Positions 11,869 to 43,981 of a stretch of DNA of 64,000 nt are shown piece after piece. This DNA is from Hypanus sabinus. Taxonomy: Eukaryota. Below the pieces are notes generated by a model, which was not told where the DNA came from, made no database searches, and worked only from the letters and a program-made list of their open reading frames with translations. Position 1 is the stretch's first letter. Each line of letters opens with the position of its first letter. The position numbers and the translations under genes are program-made. The DNA is taken from NCBI RefSeq assembly GCF_030144855.1, contig NC_082717.1, positions 5,146,001-5,210,000 of the forward strand. Direction: 5' to 3'.

Positions 11869-12122
11869 TTGGGGATGAAAATTGTTGAAGTACTGCAAGT
11901 GTGACCTGACTAGTGTCTTATTAAGGCTCAACTTTATCTCCTTGCTTTTATATTTTATTCCCCTTGTCCACAATATTGTTCCTTTTACCAAAACGCATTA
12001 TCATACATTTCCCAACACCATATTTCATCTGCCACTTTTTGCCCATACTTCCAATTTGTCTTCGTCTTTCTTAAATTGCATTGCTTCCTCAGCACTACTT
12101 ACCCCTACAACTATCTTTATAT

Positions 12123-19499: not shown

Positions 19500-19885
19500 G
19501 ATCATCAGTGATAGGCTTAGTCATCAGCTGCACTGCAGGGACTACTTTTCCACCTGCTAGGTCATTCCCTAACAACAAATAAAGACCTTTCATCAGTAAA
19601 CTGGGCCATCGTCCCATCTTAACTGGTCCTGAAACTAACTATGACTTCAAAATTACCTTGTGCAGAGGTACAGAAACAATGTCACCCCCAATGCCTTGAA
19701 AGAGATTTACCTCACCAGTGTCAATCTCACCACAAAACTCTAGAACATTGTCTAACAAGAGTGATTGAGAAATCCCAGTATCTCGAAGAATTTTCACTGG
19801 CATCGATGGTGACTCTTTATTTACTGAAACAAATCCCTCTGACTCAAAAGGAATGAATTCTTTTCTAACCAGGTCAGACATCCTG
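19500..19885 (-). pseudogene. Gmr1-like aspartic protease
   Basis: GFVS..VKILRDTGISQSLLL (DTG motif). Confidence 0.85.
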
Positions 19886-21096
19886 ACAGAGCTTCATCAG
19901 AAAGTCCAGAACCCTGTGAGTTTATAGGTGTTTCAAATTGTTGAACACAGGCATCTAGAACTGCCTCCTTTTCCTTCTTCTTCCTCAGGAGGAAAGAATT
20001 AGACATAACATGACCAGATTTCTTGCAATAATGACAAGTACACCCATAATGTTTCTCCTTTAATTGCTTCCCTTCATCTGTACTGTTGTTGCTATTCCCA
20101 GATTTGATTTCTGGTTTACCCTGATTATCCATGTTATTCTTTTGCAGGGTCTTACCTGGTGTAAACTTAAACTTGTGGGTTAGAGCAAATTCATCTGCTA
20201 ACTTAGCCAATTTTTGCCAAGTGGCAATATCCTTCTCATATAAATATGTTTTTATGTCATTATGGATGCATCTTTTAAACGCTTCAATTAAAACCAACTC
20301 TTTCAATTTGTTGTAATCATCATTCACATTTTTAGATGTGTACTCTCGTTCAAAACAGATAGATTTCACATAAGCATATTCCACATGTGTCAGGCTCACA
20401 GATTTCCTCAAATTCCTAAACATTTGCCTATACGCCTCTGGAACCAGTTCATAGCCTTTAAGCAAAGCCTGCTTTACTGTCTCATAGTCAGCTGCACCTT
20501 CAATGCAGTGCAGAATAAGCCTGCTGAGCCTTACCTTTAATTACACTCTGCAACAGGAGAAGCCAACATACTCTTGGTCATTGTAGGCTCTAAGCAACAT
20601 TTTCAAAATGCTGGAAGTAATAATCAACCTCAACCTCATCAAATGGAGGGACCAATTTAACTTCTCGACTGGCAGCAAACTTACCACTAGAGCCAGAAGT
20701 TTGACTCATGAGCTTTAGCTTCTCTATCTCAAACAGACTTAGTTTTTTCTCTTTCTGCAGCTTCCAGCCGTCTTTGTCATTCCCAAACTCAAATCTAAGT
20801 TTCTCTAACTTTAGTTGTTCCATCCATAACTAGAGCTCAGGGTCATCTGATTTACTTTCAGGAAACAGTTCTAACACCCCGGCTTTGAGCACATCCATAG
20901 ATATATAGTGCTCAACTATACTCCTCTGAAACTCTGCCTTTTTCATAGCCCGCATTATCGTAATAAGTTTCAACTTACCAGCAATGACCAAAAACTCTGC
21001 CTGCCTATAATACGTCAAAGGTTGATGATGCCAGGAGTCTATTAATATCCAATGCAGCAGGCTTCCACACACGTCAATCAAAAGGGAAGTAATCAA
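19885..21096 (-). pseudogene. Gmr1-like gag with SCAN-like capsid domain and zinc knuckle
   Basis: LVPPFDEVEVDYYFQHFE, YELVPEAYRQMFR..LKELVLIEAFK..LADEF, CHYCKKSGHVMSNS (last Cys lost). Confidence 0.88.
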
Positions 21097-28319: not shown

Positions 28320-31300
28320 TTAACTCATATCAGATGATAGTAGCAGGCGCATGAACCCCAACTTTTCTCAAAATCGAATCAAGGATCAAAAGTTCGACTT
28401 CTGATTTTCTCCAAACTAAGACATGACATCACTTGTGAAAACCATTTCATTAAAGTGGGAGCCGAAATATCTTTCCATTTCAACAAAATAAATCTTCTGG
28501 CCAATAATGTAATGAAAGCAATTACATGTTGGTCTAATGAAGAAATATATTGAGGGATCATACCAAATAAAACTGTCAATTTATTATTTTGTAAATTAAT
28601 TTTTAAAGCTTTAGAAATTGTAGAAAGAATAGTCTTCCAAAAATGTTTCAGTACAGAACACGGCCAAAACATATGTGTCAATGTGGCTGTCCATTTTACA
28701 TCTGTCACACTGACTATCAGTATTACGAAACATTTTAGACAGCCTCTCCTTTGTCAAATAGTAACAATGAATTGAATTAAAGTGTGATTGGCATGAGTCA
28801 AAAAAGAATTGACCAACTTCAAAATCCACAACCAATCTTCTGTTATCAAAGTCATGTTAAGTTCTCTCTCCCAATCTTGCTTAATCTTAGGTGAAGAGTA
28901 ATTGTGCTGCTGTAACAATAAATTATAAATTTTCCCAATAAAACCCTTCACTAAAGGATTTATTTTTAAAGAAATACCTGACAGGTCAGAATCTTGTATG
29001 TATGGAAAACTACTTCAATATTTTTGTAAGAAGTGTCTGACCTGATGATATTGCAGGAAATGTGAATATGAGAGAGTATTTAGTTACTAATTTTTCATAA
29101 GACATCAGTCGGCCATCTTGGAACAAATCTGTGAAGGAATAAACCCCTTTAGTCCTCGAAAGAAGAAAAGTAGGATCACTTACTGAAGGTTTAAATAAAT
29201 AATTTTGATAAATTAAACTAAAAAGTTTAAATTTTTAAAGATTAAAAAAATTATGAAACTGGAACCAAATTTGTAATGACTGCTTAATCACAGGATATAA
29301 ATTTAAATTAGTAATTTTGTACAGGCAGAGAAGCTCCTAATAATGAGGTTAAGTGAAACTTTCACAGCATTAAATACCAAATCAGCCCAAGATGGTCATT
29401 CATCTCTATCAGCCCAATATAACCAAAAGCATATATAACGTATATTAACAGCCCAATAATCCATTCTTAAATTAGGTAATGCAAGACCTCCATCTTTTTT
29501 TAACCATATAACAATCACAGCACAGAAACAAGCCATCTCGGCCCTCCTAGTCCGTGCTGAACTCTTAATCTCACCTAGTCCCACCTACCCGCACTCAGCC
29601 CATAACCCTCCACTTCTGTCCTGTCCATATACCTATCCAATTTTACCTTAAATGACACAACTGAACTGGCCTCTACTACTTCTACAGGAAGCTCATTCCA
29701 CACAGCTCACTCTCTGAGTAAAGAAATACCCCCTCATCTTTCCCTTAAACTTTTGTCCCCTAACTCTCAAATCATGTCCTCTCATTTGAATCACCCCTAC
29801 TCTCAATGGAAACAGCCTATTCACATTAACTCTATCTATCCCTCTCAAAATTTTAAATACCTCGATCAAATCCCCCTTCAACCTTCTATGCTCCAATGAA
29901 TAGAGAGCTAACTTGTTCAACCTTTTTCTGTAACTTAAGTGCTGAAACCCAGGTAACGTCCTAGTAAATCATCTCTGCACTCTCTCTAATTTATTGATAT
30001 CTTTCCTATAATTCAGTGACCAGAACTGTACACAATATTCCAAATTTGGCCTTACCAATGCCTTGTACAATTTTAACATTACATCTCAACTTCTGTACTC
30101 AATGCTCTGATTTATAAAGGCCAGTGTTCCAAAAGCCTTCTTCACCAGCCTATCTACATGAGACTCCACCTTCAGGGAACTATGCACTGTTATTCCTAGA
30201 TCTCTCTGTTCCACTGCATTCCTCAATGCCCTACCATTTACCCTGTATGTACTATTTGGATTATTCCTGCCAAAATGTAGAACCTCACACTTCTCAGCAT
30301 GAAACTCCATCTGCCAACGTTCAGCCCATTCTTCCAACTGGCATAAATCCCCCTGCAAGCTTTGAAAACCCACCTCATTATCCACAACACCTCCTACCTT
30401 AGTATCATTGACATACTTAATAATCCAATTTACCGCCCCATCATGCAGATCATTTATGTATATTACAAACAAGATTAGGCCCAAAACAGATCCCTGAGGC
30501 ACCCCGCTAGTCACCGACCTCCATCCCGATAAACAATTATCCACCACTACTCTCTGGCATCTCCCATCTAGCCACTGTTGAATCCATTTTATTACTCCAG
30601 CATTAATACCTAATGACTGAACCTTCTTAACTAACCTTCCATGTGGAACTTTGTCAAAGGCCTTGCTGAATTCCATATAGACTACATCCACTGCCTTATC
30701 CTTGTCAACATTCCTCGTAACTTCTTCAAAAAATTCAATAAGATTTGTCAAACATGACCTTCCACGCACAAATCCATGCTGGTTACTCCTAATCAGATCC
30801 TGTCTATCCATATAATTATAAATACTATTTCTAAGAATACTTTCCATTAATTTACCCACCACTGATGTCAAACTGACAGTTCTATAATTGCTAGGCTTAC
30901 TTCTAGAACCCTTTTTAAACAATGGAACCACATGAGCAATACGCCAATCCTCTGGCACAATCCCCGTTTCTAATGACATCCTAAAGATCTCTGTCAGAGC
31001 TCCTGCTACCTCTACACAAACTTCACTCAAGGTCCTGGGGAATATCCTGTCAGGACCCAGAGATTTATCCACTTGTAAACTTCTTAAAAGCGCCAGAGCT
31101 TCCATCTCTTTAATTGTCATAGGTTCCATAACTTCCTTACTTGTTTCCCACACCTTACATAATTCAATATCCTTCTCCTTAGTGAATACCAAAGAGAAGA
31201 AATCGTTCAAAATCTCTCCCATCTCCCTGGGCTACACACATAGCTGATCACCCTGATTCTCTGAGGGAACAATTTTATCCCTCACTATCCTCTTGCTGTT

Positions 31301-34300
31301 AATATAACTGTAGAAACCTTTCGGATTTACTTTCACCTTATTTGCCAAAGCAACCTCGTATCTTCTTTTAGCTTTTCTAATCTCTTTCTTAAGATTCCTT
31401 TTACATTCTTTATAATCCTCGAGCAATTCCTTTACTGCATGCTGCCTATATCTACTGTAGACATCCCTCTTTTTCCGAACCAAGTTTCTAATATCCCTTG
31501 AAAACCATGGTACTTTCAAACCTTTAACCTTTCCTTTCAACCTAACAGGAACATAAAGATTCTGTACCCTCATAATTTTACCCTTAAATAACCTCCATTT
31601 CTCTATTACATCCTTCCCATAAAACAACTTGACCCAATCCACTCTCTCTAAATCCCTTCGCATCTCCTCAAAGTTAACCTTTCTCCAATCAAAAATCTCA
31701 ACTCTAGGTCCTGTCCTGTCCTTCTCCATAATTATATTGAAGCTAATGCTATTGTGATCACTGGACCCGAAGTGCTCCCCAACACATACATCTGTCAGCT
31801 GACCTATCGTATTCCCTAGCAGGAGATCCAACACTGCCCCATCTCTAGTCGGTACTTCTATGTATTGTTGCAAAAAACTATCCTGCACACATTTCAAAAA
31901 CTCTAAACCATCCAGCCCTTTTACAGAATGAGCTTCCCAGTCTACGTGTGGAAAATTAAAATTTCCCTCAATCACCACCTTGTGTTTACTACAATATCTG
32001 CTATCTCCTTACACATTTGCTCTTCCAACTCACGCTCCCCATTAGGTGGCCTATAATACACTCATATCAGTGTTACTACACACTTCCCATTCCTCAATTC
32101 CACCCAAATAGTCTCCCTAGAGGAGCTCTCTAATCTGTCCTTCCAAAGCACCGCCATAAGATTTTCTCGGACAAGCAATGCAACACCTCCTCCTCTGGCC
32201 CCTCCTACTCTATCACACCTGAAGCAACTAAATCCAGGAATGTTTAGTTGCCAATCACTCCCTTCCTGCAACCATGTTTGCAACAACGTCATAATTCCAT
32301 GTATCAATCCACGCTTTAAGCTCATCCACCTTTCTTACAATGATATTTAGCAATTCTTGGTCTTTTATTATTCCAAACAGAAGATGAAATTATGGAGTCA
32401 ACCTGAACGAAGAATTTCTTAGTTTGAAAAAATAGGGATATTTTGAAGTACATTTAAAATTTTTTAGTAAAATTATCATTTTAACGCATGAATTCGACCG
32501 ATTAACAAAAGTGTAAGTGGATTCCATCTACAAAATAATTGCTTCATAAAATCCACTAAAGGAACCAAATTAGTTTTATAAAGGTCTTTACGATTTTTCG
32601 TGATAATAATGCCTAAATATTTAAATGAGTCCGTAACCCTAAAAAGAAAGTCATCATATATAGAAGCAGAATCAGGGAAAGGAATTTACTTTTATGAAGG
32701 TTGAGCTTATATCCCGAACACTTTCCAAAATCATTTAATAGTTTCAATAAACTAGGAATGGATTATTCAGGATTTGAAATATAAACTAAATGATCATCAG
32801 CATAAAGAGAGATCTTATGAACAGTCCCATTTATAAAAATTCTATGAATATCTTTCCCTTCACAAAGTGCAATAGCCAAGGGTTCCAGCACCAAATTAAA
32901 TAACAAATGACTTAAAGGACATCCTTGACTCGGTACCCCGTGAAAGCTGATAAAACGGAGATCTGCAATTGTTAGTAATAACAGTAGCAATTGAGCTTTT
33001 ATACATCATTCCAATCCACTTATTAAAATTAATACCAAAGCCGAATTTCTCTAAAACATTCAATGAGTATTTCCATTCAACTCTGTCAAATGTCTTTTCA
33101 TTAACAAAAGAGGCAACACATTGGAGAGCCTTAGAAAAGGATGAATATATAACATTTAACAGTCTCTGAACATTAGAAAAGGAGTAACGGTCCTTTACAA
33201 AATCTGTATGATCTTGAGAAATAATTTCAGCCAATAATTCTCCAGCCATTAAGCCATTATTTTGAGAGAATTTTAGCATCCACATTTAATAATTAAATAA
33301 CACTATATGAAGCACAGTCAGTAGAATCTTTATCTTTCTTAAGAATTAAAGAAATGGAAGCTTGATAAAATGTGGGAGATAACGGTCCTATCAAAAGAGA
33401 ATCTTTAAACGTTTCCAACATATATGAGGACAGCAACTTTTCAAACATTTTATAAAATCCTACATAATAACCATCAAGTCCAGTAGCTTTACCAGATTGC
33501 TTTGAAAAAATAACTTTCTGAATTTTGCTTTCAGTAATAGGAGTATCAAGTTTTTTGATCTTCAGCAGAAATTGGAGGAAAATCAATCTTTTGTAAAAAG
33601 GCATTCATTTTATAAGAATCAACCGAAAACTGAGATTTATAAAGTTCAATATAAAAGTCTTGAAAAATGTTATTAATATCTTCATAACTACATGCTAAAC
33701 TTCCATCTCACTTATGAAGTTATTTTTTTTTCTTTTTAGCTCTAGCTGCTTTTAATTGAGATGCTAATAGCTTATTACTTTTATCTCCAAACACATAAAA
33801 TTGACTTTTCAATTTAAGTAAATTTCTTTCAAAAGGATAAGTTAATAATAAATTATATTGTGATTGGAGTTGAACTCTTTGTTTAAATAAATCAAAGCTA
33901 GGAGAGTGCATAAATATTATCTAAGTCTTTAATTTGTTTGGAAATTTTATCTAATTCTATTTTTGTATGTTTCTTCAGCTTAGTTGAATCGGAAATTATC
34001 TGACCACGCAAATATGCTTTAAATGTATCCCATATAATCAACTTCGATACATCTCCCATATAGTTAAAAAGAAAAAAACTCTTTTATCTGAGTCTCAATA
34101 AATCTGACAAAGTCTGTAATAAATCTGTAATAAGTCTGTAATAAATTTTCTGTAAAAAGCCAAGGCAAATTTGCAATAGTGACTTCTTTCAGTTCAAAAG
34201 CTAAGCTTAAAGGTGCATGATCCAAAAGAACTATAGAATCATATTCACATTTCTGGACTTCGATGATTGACTATAAAGCAATCGGTTCTCAAATATTTTA

Positions 34301-37149: not shown

Positions 37150-37660
37150 GACCAGACCACACTTGGAGAATTGTAAGCAGTTCTGGGTCCCTTATCTAAG
37201 AAAAGATGTGCTGGAATTGTAAGGGTCCAGAGGAGATTCACAAGAATGATTCCGGGAGTGCTTGATGGTTTTGGTTCTGTAGCCACTGGAGTTTAGAAGA
37301 ATGAGCAGGGATCTCATTGAAACTTATCGGATATCGAAAGGCCCAGATAGAGTTGATGTGGAGAAGATGTTTCCAATAAAATGTGAGTCTTGGAGGAGGG
37401 AGCACAGCCTTAGAATAGTTTTATCTCTTTAGAACAAAAATGACAAGAAGTTTCTTTAGCCATTGGATGGCAAAATTGTGGAATTCATTGCCATAGATGG
37501 CCCTGACTCTAAGTCATTGGGTATATTTATAGTGGAGGTTGATAGGTTTTGATTAGTTTGGATGTTAAATGTTACACAGGGAAGGGAGAACAGGGCTGAG
37601 TGGGATTGTAAATCAGTCCTAATAAAGAAGCACATCTGACTGAATAGGCCAAGAGGCCCA
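37150..37660 (+). mobile_element. CR1 3' fragment
   Basis: RPHLENC..PYLRKDVL..RRFTRMIPG followed by a 3' UTR. Confidence 0.82.
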
Positions 37661-38151
37661 ATTCTGTTCCTATGGTTTTCTGTACCCACCCTATCCATGC
37701 TTCTCTTTCAGATCACCCTTCAGTTTCCTACGGTTTAATGAATAAAGTCCAACTTCTCTCTATACCTCAGTCCTTCAAGTACTGTCAGCAGTCTCTCATG
37801 GCTCCAAATGTGACAAAAATGCCTGAAGAATGTGCTCCCAAATTTTCGTGAGAGCAGAGCTCAGGTGATTAATCTTAATTCCCTCAAGAATTTTGGAATC
37901 CAGAGGGTTGTTATGCTGCTTAAAAAGTTGCAGGCTCTTGCTACTCTCTCTCACTCATTTCTAGGTGCATGGCACACTTTGCACTGAATATCTGGTAGAC
38001 CTGGAATTTCTAGACCTGACGCTGGAGAAGTTCAAAGTTCAAAGTTCGAAGATTTCTTTTCAGATGGAGAACAGCAGATATCCCAAAATTGCTGCAGATT
38101 CCATTTTCCCAATTTCACCTGATTTTTCCTCATTCTCCTTCACCCGTTCTG

Positions 38152-38277
38152 GTAAAATTAGCCTGGAAGTATGTTGCCATGGTGATTGACCAGCTCTTTC
38201 TCTGGATATTCATCATTGCTTGTCTGTAGGGAACTATTGGACTCTTCCTGCTCCTGTGGCTGGCTGGAATGATCTAA
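38152..38277 (+). pseudogene. CHRNA2/CHRNA4: Pseudogenised terminal (TM4) exon of a neuronal nicotinic acetylcholine receptor alpha2/alpha4-type subunit
   Basis: Translates [40 protein letters not shown]; the recalled alpha4 C-terminus [41 protein letters not shown] matches 31/41; upstream polypyrimidine tract with the acceptor AG replaced by TG; in-frame TAG at 38227-38229; AATAAA at 38406-38411. Confidence 0.9.
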
Positions 38278-38509
38278 AGGTAGGAGGACGATGGAGCTAG
38301 GATAACACACTCCATTAGGGTACCTGTGCCCCCACACACTGAACCCCAGGACCACTCTCTGCACCAAGCTGTTATCAGTGCTGCATTTGAATGAAATTAG
38401 ATATTAATAAAAATAATTTTAATATTTTGGATTTGTGGTGGTCCGGTAAATCTTTCATTATTGGGCTGATGTTTCTTCAATGAAATGGAATATTCCAGAA
38501 AATACTTGC

Positions 38510-39010
38510 ATCTCTTGCTCTTCATTAGTCAGAGGATTGAGTTGAAAGATGAAAGATAATATGGCAGCTCTATAAGACTCCAGTTGCACCACACTTGGAA
38601 CATTGTGTTCAGTTCGTCACACCATTATAGGAAGGATGTGGAAGCTTTTGAGAGGGTGCAGAGGAGATTTTCCAGGACACTGCCTCGATTAGAGAGAATA
38701 TCGTTTGAGGATAAGTTGAGCAAGCCTGGGATTGTTTCTCTGCAGAGAAGGAAGATGAGAGGTGTACAAGGTGATAAGTCATATATTGAATAGAGAGCCA
38801 GAAACTTCTTCCCAGGGTGCAAATGGCTAATAGAAAGGGGCATAATTTTAGGTTGATTGCAGGAATGTATGGGGGGGAGGGTGTCAGAGGTTTTTTTACT
38901 CAGAGAGTAGTGCGTGTGTGCAATGCTTTGCCTGGGGTGGTGGTAGAGGCAGAAACATTAGGGACCTTTTAGAGGAACATATATGATAGAACAATGGAGC
39001 GCAATGTGAG
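38510..39010 (+). mobile_element. CR1 3' fragment
   Basis: PHLEHCVQF..HYRKDVEAFERVQRRF. Confidence 0.82.
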
Positions 39011-40855: not shown

Positions 40856-43645
40856 ATCTATTTTAATGCTAGGAGCATTGTAAGAAAGGTGGATGAGCTT
40901 AAAGCGTGGATTGATATCTGGAATTATGACATTGTTGCAAACATGGTTGCAGGAAGGGTGTGATTGGCAACTAAATATTCCTGGATTTAGTTGCTTCAGC
41001 TGTGATAGAGTAGGAGGGGCCAGAGGAGGAGGTGTTGCATTGCTTGTCTGAGAAAATCTTATGGCGGTGCTTTGGAAGGATAGATTAGAGAGCTCCTCTA
41101 GGGAGGCTAGTTGGGTGGAATTGAGGAATGGGAAGGGTGTAGTAACACTGATAGGAGTGTATTATAGGCCACCTAATGGGGAGCGTGAGTTGGAAGAGCA
41201 AATATGTAAGGAGATAGCAGATATTTGTAGTAAACACAAGGTGGTGATTGAGGGAGATTTTAATTTTCCACACGTAGACTGGGAAGCTCATTCTGTAAAA
41301 GGGCTGGATGGTTTAGAGTTGTGAAATGTGTGCAGGATAGTTTTTTGAAACAGTACATAGAAGTACCGACTAGAGATGGGGCAGTATTGGATCTCCTGTT
41401 AGGGAATGCGATAGGTCAGCTGACAGATGTATGTGTTGGGGAGCACTTCGGGTCCAGTGATCACAATAGCATTAGCTTCAATATAATTATGGAGAAGGAC
41501 AGGACAGGACCTAGAGTTGAGATTTTTGATTGGAGAAAGGCTAACTTTGAGGAGATGCGAAGGGATTTAGAGAGAGTGGATTGGGTCAAGTTGTCTTATG
41601 GGAAGGATGTAATAGAGAAATGGAGGTCATTTAAGGGTGAAATTATGAGGGTACAGAATCTTTATGTTCCTGTTAGGTTGAAAGGAAAGGTTAAAGGTTT
41701 GAAAGCACCATGGCTTTCAAGGGATATTAGAAATTTGGTTCGGAAAAAGAGGGATGTCTACAATCGATATAGGCAGCATGGAGTAAAGGAATTGCTCGAG
41801 GAATATAAAGAATGTAAAAGGAATCTTAAGAAAGAGATTAGAAAAGCTAAAAGAAGATACGAGGTTGCTTTGGCAAGTAAGATGAAAATAAATCCAAAGG
41901 GTTTCTGCAGTTATATTAATAGCAAAAGGATAGTGAGGGATAAAATTGGCCCCTTAGAGAATCAGAGTGGTCAGCTATCTGTGGAGCCGAGGGAGATGGG
42001 AGAGATTTTGAATGATTTCTTCTCTTCGGTATTCACTAAGGAGAAGAATATTGAATTGTGTAAGGTGTGGGAAACAAGTAAGGAAGTTATGGAACCTATG
42101 ACAATTAAAGAGGTGGAAGTACTGGCACTTTTAAGAAATTTAAAACTGGATAAATCTCCGGATCCTGACAGGATATTCCCCAGGACCTTGAGGGAAGTTT
42201 GTGTAGAAATAGCAGGAGCTCTGACGGAGATCTTTAAGATGTCATTAGAAATGGGGATTGTGCCGGAGGATTGGCATATTGCTCATGTGGTTCCATTGTT
42301 TAAAAAGGGTTCTAGAAGTATGCCTAGCAATTATAGACCTGTCAGTTTGACATCAGTGGTGGGTAAATTAATGGAAAGTATTCTTAGAGATAATTTTAAT
42401 AATTATCTGGATAGACGAGATCTGATTAGGAGTAGCCAGCATGGATTTGTGTGTAGAAGGTCATGTTTGACAAACCTTATTGAATTTTTTGAAGAAGTTA
42501 TGAGGAATGTTGACGAGGGTAAGGCAGTGGATGTAGTCTATATGGACTTCAGCAAAGCCTTTGACAAAGTTCCACATGGAAGGTTAGTTAAGAAGGTTCA
42601 GTCATTAGGTATTAATGCTGGAGTAATAAAATGGATTCAACAGTGGCTGGATGGGAGATGCCAGAGAGTAGTGGTGGATAATTGTTTATCGGGATGGAGG
42701 CCGGTGACTAGAGGGGTGCCTCAGGGATCTGTTTTGGGCCCAATGTTGTTTGTAATATACATAAATGATCTGGATGATGGGGTGGTAAATTGGATTAGTA
42801 AGTATGCCGATGATACTAAGGTAGGAGGTGTTGTGGATAATGAGGTGGGTTTTCAAAGCTTGCAGGGAGATTTATGCCGGTTAGAAGAATGGGCTGAATG
42901 TTGGCAGATGGAGTTTAATGCTGAGAAGTGTGAGGTTCTACATTTTGGCAGGAATAATCCCAATAGAACATACAGGGTAAATGGTAGGGCATTGAGGAAT
43001 GCAGAGGAACAGAGAGATCGAGGAATAACAGTGCATAGTTCCCTGAAGGTGGAGTCTCATGTAGATAGGGTGGTGAAGAAGGCTTTTGGAACGCTGGCCT
43101 TTATAAATCAAAGCATTGAGTACAGAAGTTGGAATGTAATGTTAAAATTGTACAAGGCATTGGTAAGGCCAAATTTAGAATATTGTGTGCAGTTCTGGTC
43201 ACCGAATTATAGGAAAGATATCAATAAATTAGAGAGAGTGCAGAGAAGATTTATTAGGATGTTACCTGGGTTTCAGCACTTAAGTTACAGAGAAAGGTTG
43301 AACAAGTTAGGTCTCTATTCATTGGAGCGTAGAAGGTTGAGGGGGGATTTGATCGAGGTATTTAAAATTTTGAGAGGAATAGATAGAGTTGACGTGAATA
43401 GGCTGTTTCCATTGAGAGTAGGGGAGATTCAAATGAAAGGACATGATTTGAGAGTTAGGGGCCAGAAGTTTAAAGGAAACACGAGGGGGTATTTCTTTAC
43501 TCAAAGAGTGATAGCTGTGTGGAATGAGCTTCCTGTAGAAGTAGTAGAGGCCAGTTCAGTTGTGTCATTTAAGGAAAAATTGGATAGGTATATGGACAGG
43601 AAAGGAGTGGAGGGTTATGGGCTGAGTGCGGGTAGGTGGGACTAG
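40856..43645 (+). CDS. CR1 ORF2; EN part frameshifted, 774 codons open from 41321
   Basis: YFNARSI..WNYDIVA, YYRPP, GDFNFP, SNYRPVSLT, DFSKAFDKVPH, GVPQGSVLGP, SKYADD. Confidence 0.93.
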
Positions 43646-43981
43646 GTGAGATTAAGAGTTCGGCACGGACTAGGAGGGCTGAGATGGCCTGTTTCCATGC
43701 TGTGATTGTTATATGGTTATATGGTTATATGGGATTCATTAGAAAGAAGAATGGAAAGGAGGTTCTGTGGTTGAGAACGAGATTCCTGGATAATGTTTCC
43801 TCCCGGGTATCAGACTCCAGGACACCTCGTATTGAGTCCTCAGCTTTCTGAGGTGGCAGGGTGAAGAGTCTGAAGTCATGGTCCATAGAGTTGTCAATGA
43901 GATGGACAGGATGAGAGATGAGTTCCTGCAAAGGGAGTTCAGGTAGTTAGGTGCTAAGTTAAAGGGCAGGTTCCAAGGTTG

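Follow-up and report, generated by a model that had tools for sequence, protein, structure and literature searches.

A decayed last exon of an alpha2/alpha4-type nicotinic acetylcholine receptor gene in a stingray genome, probably an unprocessed duplicate of a copy intact elsewhere

A lone, broken exon lying among retroelement remains may be the last trace of a gene that a lineage has lost, or it may be a dead copy of a gene that the lineage still carries. Which of these two histories applies is the question raised by an exon relic of a neuronal nicotinic acetylcholine receptor (nAChR) subunit in a stingray genome. The window analyzed here is a continuous stretch of 64 kb with a vertebrate-like composition (43% G+C; CpG observed/expected ratio of 0.33), and the relic occupies positions 38152–38277 of its forward strand. 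Its translation consists of 25 codons of the fourth transmembrane helix (TM4), an in-frame TAG, and 15 further codons ending in Ala-Gly-Met-Ile, closed by TAA at 38275–38277; an AATAAA follows at 38406–38411, 128 nt downstream of the TAA. The original prediction, made from the sequence alone, had reported this translation, the internal TAG, a TG in place of the splice acceptor, and an AATAAA about 130 nt downstream, and every one of these readings was reproduced.

Sequence comparisons, with matches far above chance, confirm the proposed identity of 38152–38277: the interval derives from an alpha2/alpha4-type neuronal nAChR gene and corresponds to its last coding exon, with the TM4 helix and the C-terminal tail. 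The 25-residue first piece has human alpha-4 as its top match in the PDB (8ssz_A, residues 561–585; E = 3.6e-7), followed by beta-2, and its PDB matches are nicotinic receptor chains only. The end of the Pfam family PF02932 (Neur_chan_memb) aligns to the same piece with 27.8 bits (E = 3.6e-6), just below a cut-off of 28.1 bits that is set for whole proteins. Alpha-4 and alpha-2 tails used as tblastn queries against the window gave E values of 1.5e-16 to 4e-16, at no more than 78% identity over 41 amino acids. Positions 583–609 and 611–625 of an alpha-4 profile HMM align to the two pieces of the relic, from the exon boundary onward; in an unfiltered search of all six frames with this profile, the first piece was recovered with E = 4e-10, and the second piece was found as well. 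The relic has the tail type of alpha2/alpha4 subunits, Gly-Leu-Phe-Leu-Pro-Pro-(Trp/Phe/Tyr)-Leu-Ala-Gly-Met-Ile followed by a stop, with Leu-Leu for Pro-Pro. An exhaustive search of representative proteins with a 30-residue piece returned 29 short last-exon fragments (alpha-4, alpha-2, beta-2, and invertebrate-type) and no full-length protein. A word-indexed search with a read-through query (X at the stop) gave two candidates, neither of them close, though a length filter and the word index restrict a search of this kind.

The relic has neither the open frame nor the canonical AG acceptor of a functional gene: the TAG at 38227–38229 interrupts TM4, and TG stands at 38150–38151, the site of the expected acceptor AG. 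Additionally, the codons CTC CTG at 38251–38256 encode Leu-Leu at a position where the family has Pro-Pro. Both the stop and the lost acceptor recur in independent contigs, which supports the pseudogene status originally claimed for this exon. These contigs come from an alignment of contigs and reads of four runs to positions 37600–38900 at 80% likeness: two of organism A (X1, and X11, which consists of Hi-C raw reads and covers the region thinly), one of organism B (X6), and one of organism C (X9). A low-copy core at approximately 37820–38480 is covered by contigs belonging to the relic itself. A 558-nt contig from X1 (record 4; 37991–38548) has 14 differences from the window and keeps the TAG; a 207-nt contig from X6 (record 8; 38095–38301) has none, and so reproduces the TG and the TAG together; and a 151-nt contig from X9 (record 16; 38114–38264) has a single difference. 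An assembly error is thereby excluded.

In each of the data sets X1, X6, and X9, the relic is accompanied by a second copy of the exon. Contigs of this copy align to 38163–38696 in X1 (record 6; 602 nt, with 81 differences and 10 gap letters), to 38163–38346 in X6 (record 9), and to 38248–38394 in X9 (record 17). At position 38228, within the premature stop, these contigs have T, where the relic contigs of X1, X6, and X9 all have A. Depth over the exon in X1 (16.6) is the sum of the depths of the two contigs (9.19 + 7.4), and two copies are therefore present in the X1 genome at this level of similarity. In X6, the second-copy contig has a depth of 52 as compared with 2.6 for the relic contig, a 20-fold excess, whereas the ratio is approximately 1:1 in X1 and X9; this excess could stem from target capture, from RNA in the library, or from amplification in organism B.

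Homology between the two copies extends from the exon into non-coding flanks, as contigs from X1, X6, and X9 attest. On the 3′ side it includes the former 3′ UTR with its AATAAA (38278–38567, forward strand), which second-copy contigs of all three runs place within the duplicated segment. On the 5′ side, records 3 and 5 of X1, two more contigs, match 37712–37846 and 37985–38144 with approximately 90% identity, and end about 18 nt beyond 38144, where the second-copy contig of X1 (record 6) starts. From this adjacency and from their similar depth, we infer that they represent the intron of the second copy; 37712–38144 (forward strand) would accordingly be intron-derived sequence 5′ of the relic exon and part of the same duplicated segment. 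The presence of two slightly different upstream contigs in X1 may reflect more than one extra copy.

Comparison of the two exons rests on nine listed differences across 27 codons, from codon 15 to the stop; differences within about 30 nt of contig ends, a zone that takes in the first 11 nt of the exon and the acceptor, are not listed in the contig comparison. Four of the nine are replacements, and five are silent: four codons that encode the same amino acid in both copies, and the terminal codon, TAA in the relic and TGA in the second copy. At the replacements the relic has Leu15, the TAG at codon 26, Leu34, and Leu35, where the second copy has Ile, Leu (TTG), Pro (CCC), and Pro (CCG), respectively; in 4/4 cases the residue of the second copy is that of the family consensus. 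The CCG in the intact-looking copy bears out the predicted CCG>CTG origin of the second Pro>Leu change; the first is CCC>CTC and involves no CpG. Over the stretch from codon 15 to its stop, the second copy encodes an intact alpha2/alpha4 tail and, judged from these 27 codons, probably belongs to a working gene.

Relic and second copy differ by 7.8% in the exon and by 17.6% in the 3′ flank (0.08 vs. 0.20 after Jukes–Cantor correction). A lower divergence in the exon than in the flank is as expected if the exon of the second copy has been under purifying selection while the relic and the flanks have drifted. Among the three organisms the relic itself differs by only 0–2.5%, which suggests a duplication much older than their split, with the two copies separating long before organisms A, B, and C did. 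At the slow substitution rates of elasmobranchs, 0.17–0.20 substitutions per site would correspond to many tens of millions of years. Comparison with the wider family probably also places the changes Glu-Asp>Leu-Ala and Arg>Gln (the latter predicted as CGG>CAG) on the relic lineage, and would place the acceptor change AG>TG there as well. With these probable assignments, about 7 of 41 codons carry replacements on the relic side (Leu-Ala, Gln, Leu15, the stop, and Leu-Leu). By a rough reckoning this is close to what neutral drift would produce over half of the flank divergence, and it favours a copy that was never functional.

We consider it probable that the relic is a non-functional, unprocessed, DNA-level duplicate of an alpha2/alpha4-type last exon, the source or sister copy of which is intact elsewhere in the genome. 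A segmental duplication would have copied the exon together with its surroundings, taking in approximately 430 nt of intron on the 5′ side and, on the 3′ side, no less than some 300–400 nt of flank, possibly more; it appears that the 3′ end alone was copied, and that the copy was dead on arrival. Neutral drift after the duplication would have converted the acceptor from AG to TG, a Leu codon to TAG, Pro-Pro to Leu-Leu, and Ile to Leu, and probably also Glu-Asp to Leu-Ala and Arg to Gln, with the relic now stranded, without function, between the remains of LINE and LTR retroelements. Among the origins first suggested was a dead local duplicate. The second copy in three data sets upholds the duplicate; the word "local" lacks support, as the intact copy lies outside this 64 kb.

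The surroundings agree with their initial description as a retroelement graveyard. All of the large ORFs scanned are retroelement-derived (reverse transcriptase, RNase H, integrase, a SCAN/gag-like domain, and aspartyl protease), and the relic sits between two inverted LINE copies, at approximately 29501–32342 (reverse strand) and 40876–43719 (forward strand). Other LINE pieces come closer, reaching up to about 37760 on the 5′ side of the relic and starting from about 38520–38570 on the 3′ side. The low-copy segment is bounded 5′ by a high-copy repeat fragment at 37644–37760, marked by contig depth (2268 at 37644–37687 vs. 10–40 over 37820–38480) and by the weak similarity of 37708–37755 to the LINE copies at approximately 43304–43352 and 29866–29905. 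At 38568–38975 (forward strand), a very high-copy LINE 3′ fragment adjoins the 3′ flank of the relic, and the first part of this fragment also aligns in a second-copy contig. A loose-end consensus at the fragment matches the C-terminal coding region of the LINE reverse transcriptase; a repeat within it (D7, 38892–38974) matches the LINE tail at 43493–43575; and the region also matches LINE pieces in the whale-shark alpha-4 locus.

Three further observations concern these elements. The inverted LINE copies are approximately 8.5 kb apart and 95–99% identical over about 2.8 kb, and the forward copy holds an open reverse transcriptase ORF of 774 amino acids (41321–43645); a young inverted pair of this kind could mediate inversion or deletion. 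Approximately 90 nt at 38612–38699, within the sequence coding for the reverse transcriptase C-terminus, reaches summed depths of about 900,000 in X1, 51,000–85,000 in X6, and about 15,000 in X9, and many raw-read joints there go back 42–47 bases, which suggests that these genomes also carry this piece as a short tandem repeat or satellite-like array. An ORF at 19824–20465 (reverse strand), inside an LTR-element region, has a weak match to the SCAN domain (E = 5e-5, under the Pfam cut-off), and is probably a relative of retroviral gag capsid rather than a host SCAN zinc-finger gene.

The relic could instead descend from a duplicate of the whole gene that died later, its exons 1–5 having been deleted, buried by retroelements, or left upstream of the window. 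The dimensions of the locus leave some room for such a history: intron 5 of whale-shark alpha-4 measures about 15 kb, and the 38 kb lying 5′ of the relic is mostly retroelement sequence, which could push exon 5 out of the window. Additionally, the 5′ limit of the duplicated segment is hidden, the contigs breaking at the high-copy repeat near 37650–37700. However, these 38 kb contain no trace of the highly conserved sequence coding for TM1–TM3 or the Cys-loop, even by unfiltered profile search, and the number of replacements in the exon, which roughly fits neutral decay since the duplication, argues against a long functional life. We regard a duplicate of the whole gene as unlikely, though a serious candidate.

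The exon search behind this judgement spans 64 kb, and exons may exist past the 5′ start of the window. Motif scans of the window found no Cys-loop, TM1–TM3, or Cys-Cys pair motif. No second nAChR exon was found in it by tblastn with alpha-4 from lizard, shark, ray, bichir, gar, and primate, by tblastn with alpha-2 from mammal, bird, and teleost, or by the unfiltered alpha-4 HMM search in all six frames; the predicted isolation of the relic within the window is borne out by all of these methods. A TM4-like match at 12012–12098 (reverse strand) was rejected as due to chance: its E values range from 0.05 to 1.7, only Trp-Lys-Tyr is held in common, and it lies beside an LTR.

Unitary loss, under which this lineage would have lost chrna2, chrna4, or an additional ohnolog and kept the relic as its final trace, is very improbable. 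In its favour, CHRNA2 and CHRNA4 were not identified in the Australian ghostshark (Pedersen et al., 2019; PMC6354393), and our protein searches returned no stingray alpha2/alpha4 protein. However, the second copy, with its intact exon reading and homologous flanks, occurs in the same runs as the relic, and full-length alpha-4 orthologs exist in sharks and in Mobula rays. The suggestions that the relic might record a lineage-specific loss of chrna2 or chrna4, or might be all that remains of an additional alpha2/alpha4 paralog, are both contradicted by this copy, which lies elsewhere in these genomes and in which the exon looks intact. The shark and ray proteins on record show that at least alpha-4 has been kept in elasmobranchs, and the ghostshark gap is probably one of assembly or annotation.

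A processed origin, the relic being a 5′-truncated retrotransposed copy, would be suggested by a frame that stays open for 44 codons 5′ of the exon, into which weak tblastn alignments stretched, as well as by A/T-rich sequence after the AATAAA and by the abundance of LINEs. The upstream codons, however, do not match the end of exon 5, which in the alpha2/alpha4 family is as conserved as TM4: over the nearest 20–44 codons, about 3–4 chance identities occur in roughly 20 positions, and a gap is needed to obtain them. The relic exon, unlike these codons, is 68–78% identical to the family. Similarity starts at 38152, which is the position of the last intron of the family, right before Val-Lys-Glu-Asp-Trp. 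Just 5′ of this point, 25 of 30 nucleotides are pyrimidines (38122–38151, forward strand), a density matched by 0.46% of 30-nt windows in the 64-kb stretch; the tract ends in TG, a dead acceptor. The lizard alpha-4 locus (L001), whale-shark alpha-4 (L004), and contig L002 have a pyrimidine tract and CAG before the same Val-Lys codons, so that the tract of the relic lies exactly where the intron ends in these loci. Homology to the second copy, moreover, runs along both sides of the exon and continues past the AATAAA into the shared LINE fragment. As the start of similarity coincides with the conserved intron position and follows a pyrimidine tract, the relic was copied from genomic DNA and not from mRNA, which supports the unprocessed origin first proposed; a processed origin is exceedingly improbable.

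An assembly or sequencing artefact, or an alternative terminal exon still used by a live gene, has nothing beyond general possibility in its favour and is scarcely credible, because three runs, each of a different labelled organism and drawn from different studies, show the relic with its TAG and Leu-Leu, and because relic words are absent from runs guessed to be RNA, which are small and give weak negative evidence.

If the relic is a DNA-level duplicate, the identity of its parent gene becomes a question in its own right. Full-length proteins annotated as alpha-4 or alpha-4-like are on record for sharks and Mobula rays, with the protein of one Mobula species annotated as alpha-2-like. These elasmobranch sequences group together (SH-aLRT 99) in a maximum-likelihood tree of 43 proteins, and the group is placed with bony-vertebrate alpha-4 (SH-aLRT 96) and apart from alpha-2 (88); the shark and Mobula proteins are therefore chrna4 orthologs. 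Within this group, Mobula chrna4 (P0249, P0268, P0269; M. birostris and M. hypostoma) has a branch of 0.42 substitutions per site, as compared with less than 0.1 in sharks, and NCBI names the ortholog alpha-4-like in one of the two species and alpha-2-like in the other; the evolution of chrna4 may have accelerated in manta and devil rays.

Tails of the shark and Mobula chrna4 proteins read Gly-Thr-Leu-Gly…Trp-Met/Lys-Ala-Gly-Met-Leu. The relic and the second copy lack this elasmobranch tail and instead read Gly-Thr-Ile-Gly…Trp-Leu-Ala-Gly-Met-Ile, and their four conservative differences from the shark consensus would lower the odds of alpha-4 parentage. Identities do not separate alpha-2 from alpha-4, with 25/27 versus 24/27 over the tail and values of approximately 76–77% throughout for exon DNA. 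On balance we lean, with modest confidence, toward a parent other than the chrna4 ortholog, and most simply toward chrna2; if the elasmobranch alpha-4 ortholog is of the …Gly-Met-Leu type, alpha-2 would be the obvious candidate. The protein searches retrieved no elasmobranch alpha-2 sequence, and a literature search for chrna2 in elasmobranchs returned nothing relevant. There is a slim chance that the second copy is neither chrna4 nor chrna2 but a third alpha2/alpha4 gene kept in rays, whether as an extra ohnolog or as an old duplicate specific to rays, and that it gave rise to dead copies of its own. Were this the case, the 20-fold depth of the second copy in the runs of organism B would point to strong expression or amplification.

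Two contigs from other data sets contain damaged relatives of this gene family. Contig L003 (P0003; SRR23625891) was considered as an ortholog of the relic, with which it shares Ile-Ile-Ala-Cys-Leu, but was rejected: it is G+C-rich, its similarity of 75% is confined to coding sequence, and it has no flank homology. Its positions 160–282 contain an alpha-4-like last exon whose first codons are one base short relative to the family and whose Gly-Thr-x-Gly-Leu-Phe-Leu-Pro-Pro stretch is replaced by unrelated residues, and it looks like a frame-disrupted copy. Contig L002 (SRR10910720), from a G+C-rich genome, carries an alpha2/alpha4-like gene at 24–902 and 2605–2730. Its exon 5 has an in-frame stop at the Tyr of the family's Pro-Leu-Ile-Gly-Glu-Tyr, and several conserved positions are changed, with one Pro>Leu change in the tail, as in the relic; this gene may have become a pseudogene independently, in another lineage.

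Taken alone, the relic matters little: fossils of gene fragments are ordinary, and this one adds a further duplicated pseudogene fragment to a stingray genome rich in repeats. For annotation and for claims of gene loss, however, it advises caution, since a lone broken exon suggested the loss of a brain receptor where contigs show an intact copy. The relic also points to a stingray alpha2/alpha4-type gene with a C-terminal tail unlike that of annotated elasmobranch alpha-4, and so bears on which alpha2/alpha4 genes cartilaginous fishes keep, a question that the ghostshark study of Pedersen et al. (2019; PMC6354393) left standing.

Among known receptor genes, those for beta-2, alpha-3, alpha-6, and the invertebrate nAChRs have tails that are longer than that of the relic and different from it. 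CHRNA4 has its last intron at the same position before Val-Lys, and the relic also shares the Trp-Leu-Ala-Gly-Met-Ile tail; bony-vertebrate alpha-4 tails are 76–78% identical to the relic over 41 amino acids. The last exon of whale-shark alpha-4 has 71–75% DNA identity to the relic and no homology in the flanks. The relic is set apart from CHRNA4 by being broken and isolated. CHRNA2 has in common with the relic Gly-Thr-Ile-Gly-Leu-Phe and the Ala-Gly-Met-Ile end, and the intact second copy agrees at 24/27 positions with the alpha-2 tails of birds and crocodiles, as well as it does with most alpha-4 tails; mammalian alpha-2, in contrast, shows Phe in place of the Trp of the relic, and Cys-Phe-Leu in place of its Cys-Leu. 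As a kind of locus, the relic most resembles the duplicated (non-processed) pseudogenes that arise by segmental duplication, with which it shares a copied intron and 3′ flank, an intact counterpart, drift-like lesions, and a repeat-rich setting; in this company nothing about it is unusual.
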